Below, one piece after another: positions 42,879-56,509 of a stretch of DNA of 64,000 bases (the first letter of the stretch is position 1; every line of letters starts with the position of its first letter). The notes beneath the pieces were generated by a model. That model did no database searches. It was not told the origin of the DNA and was given only the letters and a program-made list of their open reading frames with translations. Origin of the DNA: Anthoceros angustus (Eukaryota; Plantae; Anthocerotophyta); contig MU008161.1 in the NCBI GenBank assembly GCA_010909165.1, forward strand, positions 1,364,001 to 1,428,000. The letters are read 5' to 3'. Made by a program: the position numbers and the translations under genes.

Positions 42879-43557
42879 CACTCGAGGCGTTGTCATATGC
42901 AACTTTGAGTGGCATGAATCACCAACCTCAAAATAATCTATAGCTGGGCCAAATCAACAATCTCAAAATGATGGATAACTGAGCCTGAATCACACAGTGG
43001 AACCTAAGCCCTATGTCTATGATGACGTCATTGTAGATGGTGACAACCTGTGCACCCGACTATATGTGTCTCATCACGTATCCGGGGGGCGCATATGTTC
43101 TTTGGGGAATGATCACAATAGCCGATAGTGTATGCTGGTGATGTTTGATTGGAGCACACACTAGAGTCAACAACACTACATTCATGAATATTTAATCAAC
43201 TTATAGTCAAGAGCTTAAATTTAGCCCCACAATGCCCAATGCCTATGGTAGAAAAGGGTATGGCTTGGAAAATAGCATGAAAACACTTGAAATGGTTTAC
43301 TTTTTTATTATACTTTCTGCTTAAATTACGAGAAAACGGGAACAAGATGTCCTTCCATTCTCTTCAAAAACAATAATCATTTCCTCAATTTGGACCTTCA
43401 AATCAACTGCTATCTATATAGAAACCTTACAAGAAATGGTAGACTCTCATATCAGGCCCGGCTTGCACTCAAAAGGGCAGCCAAAATAAACGGATTTTGG
43501 TATTGCTTCATGCGCACCTCAGCAGACACTCCCTCGTGTTTCATAGCCAAAGCTTTT

Positions 43558-43687
43558 ATGTGCTCATCTAAAAATTGGGAAAGCCGTGACTACCATGTGC
43601 TCATCTAAAAATTGGGAAAGCCGTGACTACTATGTGCTCATCTAAAAATTCGGAAAGCCGTGACTACTATGTGCTCATCTAAAAATT
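43558..43687. repeat. 37-bp tandem repeat (~3.5 units, ATGTGCTCATCTAAAAATTGGGAAAGCCGTGACTACC)
   Basis: Directly visible near-perfect units. Confidence 0.93.
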
Positions 43688-43876
43688 AGGCCCTTCTATT
43701 CTAAAGAAACTTTCTAATCCTCATCAACTCTAGTTTGAGTAAAAAAGTATACTGTGTTGAGTAAAAAATGTGAATATATAAAAGTAGAACTGATACCTAT
43801 TCAGTTCATAAATTATGCTTGTATATTATAATTTAGAATTAGATTATTAGACGCATAAGAACCATGACCTCTCCCA

Positions 43877-43917
43877 GGATGGGATTTCCCATCTCGTTCT
43901 TTTTATAAAGTCTCCAT
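43877..43917 (+). mobile_element. Isolated CRE 3'-terminal remnant
   Basis: GGATGGGATTTCCCATCTCGTTCTTTTTATAAAGTCTCCAT matches the stem-loop and terminus of the two larger CRE copies. Confidence 0.65.
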
Positions 43918-44217
43918 GTCTATTTGAGTAGATTAAATGAATAGACTTAACAACTAGACTCTTTATATAACCTAAAAGACCAAATGTCAAGGCCGTCATA
44001 CTAAAGGCTGAAGGCCGAAGGCCAAGTAGATCATACGACTGGACTGGGCGGTGAAGGCCAAGTAGGCGGTAAATTAGAAACGAAAAGACTCAAGAACCAG
44101 ACTAGCTACATAAATTAGTGTGGGAAGCATCATTCTGTAAGATCCTCCCGTGAGCGCATTTGGGATTTGTAAAGCGAAATCTCATTTCCTCAAGGTTTCC
44201 TTGTTAAGCATTGTGCT

Positions 44218-46139
44218 ATGGAGTTTGGCATTTTGATTCCCTTGCGCCTGCCATCGGCAAGCGCAGTGGAAAGGTGTCTGATACAAAAGGTTCGTCAGCT
44301 GCTCACAGATCCTGAGGCAATTTTCAGAATCGTGGTCGGGTATGATTCTGACGACCCCGTGTTCCAGGCAGAGGGAGGAACACAGGGTCAGGACTCAGTG
44401 GAGGCAAAGATGTCAAGAGATCTCCTCCACCTGTTTCCTGAAGTGCGATTAACTTGGGTCCAGCTGAGGCCCAGCCAGCCCTTCAATGCTTGTGGGGCGT
44501 GGAACTGTCTCGCCAAGGCAGCATGCTCAGCTGGAAGTGACATGTTCCTCATGCTCGGTGACGATGTCGACATCGTGCATCGGCCAGGAGCAGGGCCACG
44601 CCTATGGGAGCCGCCTGCGTCGCAGCCGTGGAGGAGAAGGCTCCCGGCTGGCCCTGCTTCCCTGTCCTGCATCGATTCCATTTGGACACCTTCGGGAACT
44701 TGTTTCCAGTTGCGGAGACCGTGAGCGAGAGGGGATTTTACAATCAGGACGCGGACCCTTTCCTGTGGGAGGTGTATCGGCGATCAGGCCTGGCGGCGTG
44801 GACATCCGCAACCGTGTTGAGGAATCGAACTGGCGGAGTGATTGGTGGTCTGACCGAGATCACCCAGACTCGGTACGAGGCCATCCACATCGAATGGAGG
44901 CTGGAGCTCCTGGAGCGGTATGCGGGACGACTGCGGCATGCTCTTGCAGAGGCGGGAGCGGATCCGCAGCGTCGCGTCACGATGGATGTGGCAGTCCCGT
45001 CTTACAGGTTGGATATCCAGAGGCTTCAAGGGATACTGAATCTGCCGACGCCTCGAGATGCAGAGGTTAGGTTTGTGATCGTTGTAGACCGGCCCATGGC
45101 CGAGCTGCAAGGCACTGAAAAGTGGCAAGCTCTGCGGGATCTCGAGACATCGCACCGGGATGTGAGGATTCGAGTAAATGCAACCAACATGGGTGCATCA
45201 GAGTCCCGGACCAGAGCTGCAAGAGAGTGCCACTCCGACTGGCTATTGTATCTGGATGACGATGTCATTCCAGATGACAACCTGCTCGACCAGTATGTGC
45301 GCCTCATCATGCAGCACCGAGACAATCCTGAAATCCGTGGATTCGTGGGAACCTCGATTCTTCCGGTGGAGCAGAGGCAGGCCACCATGGCTGTGCATCT
45401 CGCACAGGTGACCTTCTGGTGGCAGATCGCAGAATTCTGTGACAGGGAAGGAAGGCATGCTGATTGGGGCGTGACAGCCAATCTCCTGCTACGCTGGTGG
45501 CCGGGGCTGAAATTCGATAATGCCTTCCCTAAGACCGGAGGCGGAGAAGACATCGACATATGCATCTCCGCATGCGCAGCCTTCCCGAACGGAAAGCTCC
45601 TGCCAGCCACCGGGGCCAGAATCCTGCATCCCTGGTGGGACGGAGGAAGACGCTGGAGCCTGTGGAAGAGGGCCTTCCGATGGGCCCAAGGCGACGGCAT
45701 GCTTCTCAACAAGCATCCGAATTTCACCTTCCTCGGAACCCCGAACGTGTGGGAGCTGGCCACCCTGGTGTTAGGGTTTCATCTGCTCCTCCTCCCCGAC
45801 GTCGCGGCCCTCTGCCTTTCACTCGCGTGTGCTTGGATCGCCGACCTCGCGTCCTGCGCGGTGTGGATTAATTCCATACCCTACATGCAGGACGAGTTCC
45901 CCTTCGGATGCCTCCGCATCCGCGCCAGCCTCGAGTCCGCCGTGGTTCGCCAGGCGTCGGATCTCGGCCACTTCTATGGCTTCTTCCGCCGCGGCGAGCT
46001 CCGCAACCTCCTCTCCCGGAGATTCGACTGGTTCCTCGGCTCCCTTCCAGGCGTGGCCAGCTACGAGCGCAAGCGAGGCCTCCTGTTTCTTGGATTCTTC
46101 GCTGCTCTGCGCTGGATTATCTCCCGCTGGCTGCGGTAA
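44218..46139 (+). CDS. Intronless tandem GT-A/GT2 glycosyltransferase with C-terminal membrane segments, frameshifted near 44580-44604 (possible pseudogene)
   Basis: ORF1 (44218-) has IVVGYDSDD, AWNCLAKAA and MLGDDV. ORF2 (44604-46139) has FPVLHRFH, FYNQDADPFLWEVYRR, MDVAVPSY, FVIVVD, NMGASESR, LYLDDDVIPDD, WGVTANL, FPKTGGGEDIDIC, RAFRWAQGD and a hydrophobic tail. Confidence 0.85.
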
Positions 46140-47077: not shown

Positions 47078-48434
47078 ATGAAGTTCGCCAAGAAGTTGCA
47101 GAGCCATTTGGAGGAAACCCTGCCGGAGTGGAGGGACAAGTTCGTGGCCTACAAGCAGCTCAAGAAGCGGCTCAAGCTGCTCAAGTATGCGCCCGACGGG
47201 CTCACCGTCGGGGCCTTCATCCCGGCCAACGAGGCCCCGGATTCGGATGTGGCTAGGGTGGACAGCATGCTGCGGAATCACTATGGGAACCGGACGCAGG
47301 GCTGGCCTATGCGGATGATGGATGAGCGGGAGCAGGGAGCGGCTGCGGGTGCTGGTGTTGGTGCCTGTCCGGGTGCGCATGTTGCTGCGCAGGACGGAGT
47401 GGAGAGGACGTTCGCTCGGAAGCGGAAGGCTAGGGACAGCGGAGTGGATAGCGACGAGGATGAGAACTCGGACAGTCCGTTTGAGAGTGGATATTTCCCC
47501 AGCGATCAGATGGAGTTCATACGCCTTCTGAACGTGGAGCTCAAGAAGTTCAACAAGTTCTTCATCGAAAAGGAGGAGGAGTATGTCATTCGTTTGCAGG
47601 TAAGAGAGGTTGGGATGTGTGTTCGTGCAAGCCTTGGGTCTAGGTCTTGAGGTTTGGATCCGTGCGGATTGAGTTGTTTGCATGTAGTTTTGGAAGGACT
47701 TTTGTTGTACACAAGGCTTTGCTGATGTTGCGCTGTTACAGGATCTGAAGAAGAGGATAGAGAAAATGAAGGAGGCGGCTCTGGCCAAGCCGCAGCTCTC
47801 GGTGGATGACCTAAGCGAAATGAACACAATCTTCAGGCAGATGATTACGTTTCATGGAGAGATGGTGTTGTTGGAGACGTACAGCTCACTCAATTACACT
47901 GGCCTGGTGAAGATCCTGAAGAAGCATGATAAATGGACCGGGGGGGTCCTGCGCATGCCTTATATCCAGACGGTCCTGCACCAGCCTTTCTACACAACGG
48001 AGCTGCTCTCACGGCTGGTGAAAGACTGTGAGGTGAATTTGTCTGACTTGTTCCCTGTCCCAGCCACTTCCCAGCAGCAGCCTGCTGCGGAAGCTCTCCT
48101 CTTCGACGAGGGTGAAGACAGTGTCGACTCTGAGAGCGAGGAGTCGCATGTAGTCGAGTCTCCGGAGGCTGGATCCGGAAGGGAACGTGCCCAGAGTGAT
48201 GACGGCGACTTGTTTCCAGTCCCGGCCAGCAACAATTTGGACATTGTTCACAAGAGCTGTGAGGCAGCGCTGAAGACCATCAAGGACATCCGCAAGGGTA
48301 GTTCAACGTACAGCGCATTGTCCATGCCACCTCTCGATCCGCCAGACGTGGATGACAGCCTTGGGGTGGTGATCAACGAGGCGGCCAGGGACCCTCCATC
48401 GCCCTGCCGTACTGTGTCTGTTTCTCAAGACTAG
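47078..48434 (+). CDS. SPX: SPX-domain-only protein (SPX1-4 class), 2 exons (47078-47599, 47742-48434)
   Basis: MKFAKKLQSHLEETLPEWRDKFVAYKQLKKRLK; FIRLLNVELKKFNKFFIEKEEEYVIRLQ; FHGEMVLLETYSSLNYTGLVKILKKHDK; RKGSSTYSALSMPP. Confidence 0.97.
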
Positions 48435-55173: not shown

Positions 55174-56509
55174 ATGGCGGAGGAAGCGCGCATCATTGAC
55201 GGCAAAGCCATAGCTAAAGTCATTCACGCCGAAGTTCAACAGGACGTTCAGCGGCTGAAGGATGTCCATGGCTGCGTAAGCTCCCTGCCTGCCCTACATC
55301 TTCTGCTGTCTCAACGCTGGGATGCTTTCACGTGGAATGCTTTCGTGGATCCGTTTGATGCCCGAAGCTGACCCACTCTCTGCTCGGTGATAGGTTCCTG
55401 GCCTGGCAGTTGTCATCGTGGGAGAACGGAAGGACTCTCAGACGTATGTTCGCATGAAGAAGAGGGCCTGTGCAGAGGTGGGGATTCAATCTTTTGGCAA
55501 GGATTTTCCTGCAGACGTATCGGAGGAAGAACTGTTGAATGTCATCTCGGAGCTTAACAGCAACCCGGATGTGCACGGTAACTCTGTCCCATTCGCTAGA
55601 GATGAGTGAATGAATCCCGTCCATGAGGAGCTGTGTGGCATCTTGTCGATTGAAAGCCACAACTGATGTCGTCTCATGCAGCTCTGGTGGTACAGGTGTT
55701 TTGGTGCAGCTTCCTCTGCCAGAGCATATCAGTGAAGAAAACGTGCTGAACGCAGTAAGCATTGAGAAGGATGTCGATGGATTTCATCCTCTCAATATTG
55801 GAAAGCTTTGCATGAAAGGCAGAACCCCGCGCTTCGTGCCCTGCACACCCAAGGTATGCATCTTGTCTACATGGTTTCCTCACGGGCTTCTATATTTTCA
55901 GAGGAGGTGAGGTATGCCTCTTCCGTGTGCAGCAGGAGCTCAATTCAAGTCAAGGAATTCAATCTGAATTTGTGGGTGTTTTAGGGATGCATAGAGCTTT
56001 TGATACGAAATGGGATCTCTATAGCGAAGAAAAGGGCTGTGGTGGTTGGCCGAAGCAATATTGTGGGCTTACCAGCAGCCATGTTGCTACTGGAGCGTGA
56101 TGCCACTGTGTCTATAGTGCACTCACGAACCCCTGATCCTGAGAGTATCATCAAGGATGCAGACATCATCATAGCTGCCGCTGGACAAGCTCACTTGGTA
56201 TATTTCAATCAGCATGTCGCTTTATCGACATCGCTTTCTGTACATGCTAACCCTCTCCAGCTACTGCTTTCGCTTTCGCAGATCAAAGGACATTGGGTAA
56301 AGCCAGGTGCTGTGGTCATCGATGTGGGCACGAATCCTATTACTGACCCGTCTAAGAAAGCGGGCTACAGGCTTGTGGGTGATGTTGACTTTGAAGAGGC
56401 CAAAAAAGTTGCCGGCTGGATATCACCTGTTCCTGGTGGTGTTGGCCCTATGACCATTGCCATGCTGCTCAGAAACACGGTGGATGCGGCACTTGCAGCA
56501 GTAGCTTGA
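55174..56509 (+). CDS. FOLD: Bifunctional methylenetetrahydrofolate dehydrogenase/cyclohydrolase, probably cytosolic (no transit peptide), 5 exons
   Basis: [10 protein letters not shown]; [22 protein letters not shown]; VLVQLPLP; [15 protein letters not shown]; PCTPK|GC; [12 protein letters not shown]; VIDVGTN; LVGDVDF; [15 protein letters not shown]. Confidence 0.97.

Follow-up and report, generated by a model that had tools for sequence, protein, structure and literature searches.

How did a hornwort come to carry a glycosyltransferase of a type that fungi have in abundance and plants hardly at all, and what might such an enzyme make? The question is raised by the coding region at positions 44218-46139 of a 64-kb window of Anthoceros angustus DNA (the whole stretch that was analysed; all coordinates given here are positions within it, and all listed features lie on the + strand). 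The first-pass annotation had read this region as an intronless gene for a glycosyltransferase family 2 (GT2) protein with two catalytic modules and a fungal affinity, which was either acquired by horizontal gene transfer (HGT) or patchily retained. Our analysis leads us, with modest confidence, to regard it as a single-exon GT2 gene that was present before hornworts and liverworts split, has since been lost widely, has been broken by a deletion in this copy, and would encode a membrane enzyme transferring two sugars.

A patchily distributed family of two-module GT2 proteins

The window gene belongs to a large, patchily distributed eukaryotic family of two-module GT2 proteins. Its relatives were collected with word-indexed protein searches, in which the best 8000 candidates were scored, and with an exhaustive search of 1.84 billion protein representatives, in which relatives of >50% identity are collapsed into clusters. 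As the proteins of this genome itself are missing from the collection, the lack of hornwort matches carries no information on other hornworts. The coding region falls into two pieces in different reading frames (see below), which were searched, aligned and folded separately. The first word-indexed search, with the longer, 511-aa piece, recovered 39 relatives, with the liverwort protein Riccia sorocarpa R1sor_000725 at the top (E = 7.6e-134), and a profile built from plant and red-algal sequences recovered 393 relatives at E<1e-10. The exhaustive search yielded 823 clusters at E<1e-3, including 268 at <1e-30; here too the nearest protein was R. sorocarpa R1sor_000725 (KAL3682703.1; 56% identity, E = 2.4e-134), followed by a protein of Hildenbrandia rubra (EP00172_P004261; 47%, E = 1.5e-120), with everything else at or below 47%.

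Fungal members show 33-40% identity to the window protein and are numerous in Agaricomycetes and Glomeromycota (e.g. the GT2 proteins of Schizophyllum, Moniliophthora and Glomus). Further members are scattered across the stramenopiles Ectocarpus, Tribonema, the diatom Mayamaea, Chlorochromonas, the cryptophyte Rhodomonas, the diplonemid Diplonema and Gefionella, and one is found in a metagenome-assembled genome (MAG) labelled Verrucomicrobiota. A 574-aa protein from the TARA marine data (P0056) is encoded at 100% identity on a contig of 12.9 kb that binning assigned to a giant-virus MAG (L001:3918-5639; IMGVR_UViG_GVMAG-S-ERX555907-72_000001), where its neighbours are ankyrin, Rho_N-domain, Rce1-like, UvrD-helicase and orphan genes. 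A search of viral contigs with another member (P0003) gave no match, the BFVD library of viral structures held only generic GT2 proteins of 8-16% identity and no true family member, and the ESM Atlas search returned only generic bacterial and archaeal GT2 clusters. Among the annotated Viridiplantae of the protein collection, the family is found in R. sorocarpa only. In the three protein searches the family is common in fungi and almost missing from plants, in line with the first-pass annotation. Within the genus Riccia the gene, present in R. sorocarpa, may itself be patchy, or a copy in R. fluitans may be unannotated.

The window sequence is collinear with its Riccia, Hildenbrandia and fungal relatives over the full length, from the first module through the second to the C-terminal helices bearing an RFDWF motif, and it shares with them the G-G-E-D, DDD, WGVTAN, HPWW and RFDWF signatures. 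Unlike these relatives, the window copy is missing about 13 residues of module 1 and is frameshifted; it is not fused to an epimerase, a sulfotransferase or a GT8 domain. No member with a tested function was found in the literature searched, and the annotated proteins are merely called "glycosyltransferase family 2 protein". The Rhizoctonia protein RsIA_GT, described in another paper, is unrelated and 346 aa long.

Conserved motifs and predicted structure

The coding region has a GC content of 54-60% and leaves no space for a spliceosomal intron, as the first-pass annotation had held. Its further description as a single open reading frame (ORF) of about 640 codons does not apply to this assembly: the span of 1922 nt is not a multiple of 3, and a frameshift divides the coding sequence between two frames. 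The N-terminal ORF (44218-44724) runs in frame 1 from an ATG at 44218 to a stop at 44724 and encodes 168 aa. Homology within it is confined to 44218-44583, which covers the first half of module 1, a GT-A-like domain that is recognizable in the translation of this ORF by GYDSDD and the DXD-type motif LGDDV (44554-44568). From its own first residues this piece aligns to the relatives P0039, P0002 and P0001, and it retains the D and G-D-D positions conserved in the family. The 511-aa ORF (44604-46139, stop included) lies in a different frame, has an ATG just past the frame break, and covers the remainder of module 1, the whole of module 2 and the C-terminal helices.

The second half of module 1 (44604-44960) contains FPVLHRFH (44658-44681) and NQDADPFLWEVYRR (44742-44783), together with the nearly invariant columns F176, F199, D205, N228, G231 and G232. 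Module 2 (44961-45638; residues ~120-345 of the 511-aa ORF) is a canonical GT2 GT-A domain. It includes LDDDVIPDD (45252-45278), whose DDD (45255-45263; D218-D219-D220) is nearly invariant and forms the DXD of this module, as well as WGVTANL (45465-45485) and FPKTGGGEDID (45525-45557) with the invariant G-G-E-D; the family columns W288, A292, G313, G314, E315, D316 and H342 are invariant here. The C-terminal part (45639-46136) comprises HPWW (in HPWWDGG, 45627-45647), an RxxRW-like RAFRW motif (45669-45683), interface helices, further hydrophobic or amphipathic helices and the conserved RFDWF region, in which R473 and F474 are nearly invariant across the family. Every motif string listed in the first-pass annotation was recovered by motif search in the translation at the place assigned to it.

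In the Pfam scan the PF00535 profile matched residues 174-240 of the 511-aa ORF (E = 1.7e-7; 31.7 bits against a cut-off of 23.3), which lie in the second module only. At E<=0.1 the only profiles recovered were PF00535, PF13641 and PF13632, without Cellulose_synt (PF03552), in agreement with the initial view that this is not a CesA/CSL enzyme. A sequence search of the PDB with the 511-aa piece gave no match even at E<=1. The AlphaFold2 model of this piece has a mean predicted local distance difference test score (pLDDT) of 95.9 and a predicted template modelling score (pTM) of 0.94, and places the GT-A domain at residues ~120-345. With VIA-align, residues 123-499 match many GT2 structures at Z 17-19, including SpsA, TarP, the E. 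coli K4 chondroitin polymerase (K4CP), hyaluronan synthase (HAS) and BcsA.

As for the first module, the full-length Riccia model (pLDDT 91.1) shows a Rossmann-like β/α pattern in residues 31-228, and the module carries a separate, nearly invariant G-D-D along with other conserved acidic residues. When the two modules are compared by hhalign the DXD motifs fall in register, in a weak match (probability 21%, E = 0.001). A double GT-A architecture is hence supported by the models. At the C-terminus, the 4-5 predicted helices (including residues 382-395, 400-424, 436-462 and 484-510) are mostly amphipathic, and the Kyte-Doolittle hydropathy exceeds 1.5 over 19 residues only in the region of residues ~382-425. 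Because only about 2-3 helices are truly hydrophobic, the modelled enzyme is predicted to be membrane-anchored rather than a channel-forming synthase. The Pfam match, the models and the Foldseek comparisons given below agree with the early assignment of two GT-A/GT2 modules followed by C-terminal membrane helices, and the hydrophobic C-terminal part postulated there as transmembrane (TM) segments is present.

A probable deletion in the first module

Alignments with relatives follow frame 1 through LGDDVDIV(HR), at ~44583, and the other frame from (T)PMGAACVAAVEE, at ~44598. The three-frame translation and these alignments locate the frame break and missing segment at 44578-44603, where the frame shifts by a net -1 and about 13 codons are lost. 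Between LGDD..I. and G.(G/A)CV the relatives have 23-24 residues, and the window sequence has space for about 9, a gap that is seen against all relatives. The missing segment corresponds to the helix (residues 139-154 of the Riccia model) that the DXD strand of module 1 leads into. As the missing length of 40-43 nt equals 1 modulo 3, a single deletion fits both the lost helix and the shift of frame. An intron at this point was ruled out: only ~26 nt separate the last conserved residue of one frame from the first of the other, and a frame-restoring GT..AG intron would need at least 50 nt, removing conserved residues of either the DXD or the G.(G/A)CV block.

The remainder of the gene is well preserved. 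With a conservation threshold of 85% in 58 relatives, 73 alignment columns are conserved, and the window gene retains 68 of them; the others are the conservative substitutions L>M, N>T, F>Y and F>W, plus one W within the deletion. There are no other stop codons, and an open frame of 511 codons at 60% GC is very unlikely to occur by chance. These observations leave a gene that was either broken very recently, or is still used from the ATG at 44604, or appears broken through a fault of the assembly. On the last explanation the frame break would be an assembly or polishing error in an intact, functional gene with a naturally short loop in module 1. The retention of 68 of the 73 conserved positions across both pieces, with no further stop codon, is in line with this, and P0005 and P0056 likewise have a shorter segment at the same spot. 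Nevertheless, homopolymer errors do not take out 40 nt, and the size of the loss fits one real deletion that accounts for helix and frame together. We consider such an error to be an appreciable but clearly less probable explanation. Barring it, only the 511-aa product initiated at 44604, with module 2 intact, could be made in this accession.

Phylogeny and origin of the plant genes

The relationships of the family were reconstructed from the 511-aa piece in an unrooted maximum-likelihood (ML) tree (43 rows x 488 columns; LG+C20+F+G4 with posterior mean site frequencies (PMSF); support given as ultrafast bootstrap/SH-aLRT). The window and Riccia genes form a pair (99/86), which is joined by Hildenbrandia and the GC-rich sequence P0026 (91/90). 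This assemblage is nested in a clade of 15 rows (99/94) and a clade of 17 rows (100/99), both of which include the giant-virus-binned sub-clade. The Glomeromycota and Agaricomycetes form a separate clade (100/100) in the other half of the tree. A quick tree of 74 rows, used as a cross-check, gave the same picture. An ML phylogeny with fungal and other GT2 proteins had been proposed in the first-pass annotation as a check of its fungal affinity; in the tree obtained the plant genes are neither within the fungal clade nor sister to it.

These results bear directly on the most obvious source of the gene, namely a mycorrhiza-like or saprotrophic fungus that donated it to the hornwort lineage. The family is most abundant in Agaricomycetes and in Glomeromycota, the latter including symbiotic forms, the gene has no introns and adjoins transposon debris, and transfers from fungi to hornworts have been published for A. 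angustus itself (PMC7027989). Nonetheless, the fungal members are only 33-40% identical to the window protein, as against 56% for Riccia and 47% for the red alga, and their clade lies far from the plant pair. When the two plant genes were constrained to group with seven fungal genes, the approximately unbiased (AU) test gave a log-likelihood difference (delta lnL) of 137 and p-AU = 0.0007, by which a fungal donor is rejected on present sampling. Moreover, for the majority of the named fungal members listed an epimerase domain is predicted, and the plant genes lack one. The A. angustus genome paper reports 14 transferred families, and GT2 is mentioned neither in its list of transfers nor elsewhere in those parts of its text and supplements that were searched (PMC7027989). 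A fungal donation thus appears very unlikely, and the proposed fungal affinity is not supported.

The path between the window and Riccia genes is 1.49 substitutions/site, about 80% of the path between Glomus and Phlebopus in the same tree (~1.8), which stands for the distance from Glomeromycota to Agaricomycetes. This suggests that the divergence of the two plant genes is old, and it would be compatible with the split of hornworts and liverworts and not with a recent move between plants. The gene would then have been resident when the two lineages separated and would have been lost later from most plant lineages. It could have reached their common ancestor by descent from algal ancestors or by an old transfer from a non-fungal eukaryote or a giant virus. 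The unrooted tree does not separate algal descent followed by repeated loss from a single old transfer or from two independent old ones. Of the original alternatives of HGT or patchy retention, the fungal source is accordingly not borne out by the tree and the AU test; old patchy retention is still a live option, as is an old non-fungal transfer.

A different history would involve two separate and later transfers, into the hornwort and into R. sorocarpa, from related donors such as soil or freshwater algae, protists or giant viruses. The extreme patchiness of the family, with R. sorocarpa as its only annotated land plant and with R. fluitans and Marchantia lacking it, is suggestive of such events, as is the intronless structure of the gene. 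Bryophytes are reported to acquire many foreign genes (PMC12513842), and P0056, a member of a neighbouring sub-clade, matches a giant-virus-binned contig at 100%. Yet the window and Riccia genes are nearest to one another (99/86), the distance between them suits a divergence when hornworts and liverworts split, and no candidate donor exceeds 47% identity among the 1.84 billion representatives. The viral link, for its part, consists of a single binned contig of 12.9 kb, and BFVD contains no true family member. We judge repeated late transfer to be an unlikely, though not negligible, course of events, and continue to favour a gene already in place at the split of hornworts and liverworts.

Domain fusions and predicted function

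Domain architectures in the relatives offer leads to the biochemistry of the family. A GDP-mannose 3,5-epimerase-like domain is fused to 82 of 294 family proteins (including P0081, P0137 and P0117), and lies at the N-terminus in the fungal members. This short-chain dehydrogenase/reductase (SDR) domain in P0081 matches GDP-mannose 3,5-epimerase structures at E = 8e-72 (8sg0) and 5e-68 (2c59), with the next SDR class at ~1e-25. The red-algal proteins P0002 and P0040 of Hildenbrandia rubra have an N-terminal sulfotransferase domain (PF17784; E = 3e-10 and 3e-13), and P0240 has a C-terminal sulfotransferase domain (PF13469). Other members are fused to GT8, methyltransferase, histidine-phosphatase and aldehyde-dehydrogenase domains. 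No paper describing the epimerase, GT8, methyltransferase, histidine-phosphatase or aldehyde-dehydrogenase types of fusion in this family was found, and a review of GDP-mannose 3,5-epimerase lists no natural fusions of the epimerase with glycosyltransferases.

From the fusions in these relatives we infer that the family may use GDP-L-galactose or GDP-L-gulose and take part in building decorated polysaccharides, and the sulfotransferase fusions suggest a link to the synthesis of sulfated polysaccharides. The window gene would accordingly be predicted to specify an enzyme anchored in the membrane, with two catalytic modules that act in turn to add two sugars. One of these would probably come from GDP-L-galactose or GDP-L-gulose, the products of the epimerase fused in many relatives, and the product might be the repeat unit or a side chain of an acidic or sulfated polysaccharide. 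The role in an unusual polysaccharide that was proposed at the outset is plausible. The walls of Anthoceros hold an unusual disaccharide of glucuronic acid (GlcA) and L-galactose (L-Gal), alpha-D-GlcA-(1->3)-L-Gal; elsewhere in green plants L-Gal is seldom found (PMC10953000, citing Popper et al. 2003). A link between the gene and this hornwort disaccharide is put forward here as a hypothesis.

More speculatively, the family as a whole might be a missing class of two-module polymerases that transfer L-galactosyl residues, with the hornwort gene, or an intact copy of it, as the acidic polysaccharide synthase of its lineage. The idea draws on the epimerase fusions of fungi and protists, the red-algal sulfotransferase fusion and the GlcA-L-Gal of hornwort walls, and we hold it to be rather improbable as it stands. 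On this idea the sulfotransferase-fused red-algal member would be a candidate agaran or sulfated-galactan synthase; to our knowledge, such synthases have never been identified.

Several observations weigh against the reading of the gene that we prefer. In the protein collections the family is missing from every named green alga, moss, fern and seed plant and from Marchantia, so that many losses have to be assumed for vertical descent; in R. fluitans, too, whose SPX protein is in the database, no copy is annotated. The hornwort copy as assembled is interrupted; with its frameshift and lost helix the gene may be dead in this accession and, taken by itself, may be a relic. On the side of function, the epimerase fusions occur in other clades, at ~35-40% identity, and not in the 17-row clade of the plant genes, which makes donor specificity an extrapolation as far as the latter are concerned. 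GT2 enzymes invert, and inversion from UDP-alpha-GlcA does not give an alpha-GlcA linkage; the enzyme could thus account for no more than one of the two bonds of the disaccharide. Finally, a translocation channel like that of BcsA or HAS, with at least six TM helices, is not present in the window protein with its ~2-3 hydrophobic helices.

If its distribution holds, this would be a polysaccharide-synthesis gene that only a few bryophytes have in common with red algae, fungi and assorted protists, and a clean case in which to weigh loss against ancient transfer for a gene at the base of the land plants. The fusions to GDP-mannose 3,5-epimerase, sulfotransferase, GT8 and methyltransferase domains give a concrete clue to which donor sugar this large family uses. 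The family might thereby supply a candidate for two questions, namely what makes the L-galactose-containing acidic polymer of hornworts and what makes the galactans of red algae.

Genomic neighbourhood

The region 44218-46139 is a single-exon nuclear gene that lies among land-plant genes. Directly upstream is an AT-rich stretch (43001-44000; GC 0.37), and 0.9 kb downstream is an intron-split SPX-domain gene (47078-48434), in which PF03105 is matched by two ORFs; the first-pass annotation had noted both of these flanks. All named matches of the SPX protein are from land plants (Diphasiastrum, Selaginella, Riccia, Sphagnum and angiosperms), the best match in the protein collection being only 49% identical. 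Further downstream, an ORF at 56000-56509 encodes a tetrahydrofolate dehydrogenase/cyclohydrolase NAD(P)-binding domain (PF02882; E = 5e-49) and is probably one exon of a FolD-type gene. Neither the Rfam nor the tRNA scan of the window gave a match.

This setting has a bearing on the concern that the gene might be contaminant DNA or a misassembled foreign fragment rather than a plant gene. A family atypical for a plant, an AT-rich junction immediately upstream and the lack of a match to the proteome of this genome in the protein collection could all be read in this way. Against this, the gene is situated inside a 64-kb window together with the SPX gene of land-plant type and other intron-split eukaryotic genes, and its closest relative sits on a Riccia contig of 52 Mb. 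Since plant DNA surrounds the gene and no microbial sequence in the collections exceeds 47% identity, contamination is unlikely, indeed extremely so in our estimate.

Comparison with known glycosyltransferases

The plant CesA/CSL enzymes share the GT-A fold and the GT2 clan with the window protein, which differs from them in lacking the Cellulose_synt domain, the zinc finger and the plant-conserved regions and in having an extra N-terminal GT-A module. No CesA/CSL protein appeared among the sequence matches in the three protein searches.

In membrane GT2 synthases, such as BcsA (4hg6), the Chlorella virus and Xenopus HAS enzymes (7sp8, 8smn) and the minimal PcManGT (6yv7), the GT-A domain and the interface/TM helices align with the model over 280-321 residues at Z 17-19. 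The longest alignments of the 511-aa piece (299-321 residues) are with the Xenopus and Chlorella-virus hyaluronan synthases and BcsA, and the window protein has a DDD, an E-D base-like motif and an RxxRW-like motif. However, many soluble GT2 enzymes reach the same Z as the membrane synthases, and none stands out. Compared with the D, D, D plus Q(Q/R)xRW signature of processive synthases (BcsA, HAS, chitin synthase), the window protein shows DDD, G-G-E-D and R-A-F-R-W, and the family consensus is RFxxW, with neither the Q nor the R beside the W conserved.

With the full-length Riccia model as query, the top Foldseek matches are the E. coli K4 chondroitin polymerase (2z86/2z87) and human LARGE1 (7ui6), with more than 600 aligned columns that span both GT-A modules. 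The identity to these proteins is 10-12%, the TM-score ~0.3 and the root-mean-square deviation ~20 A, and the arrangement of the domains differs; unlike the family described here, K4CP and LARGE1 are without C-terminal membrane helices. In having two GT-A modules in one chain, both offer a model for the alternating addition of two sugars that is predicted for the hornwort protein.

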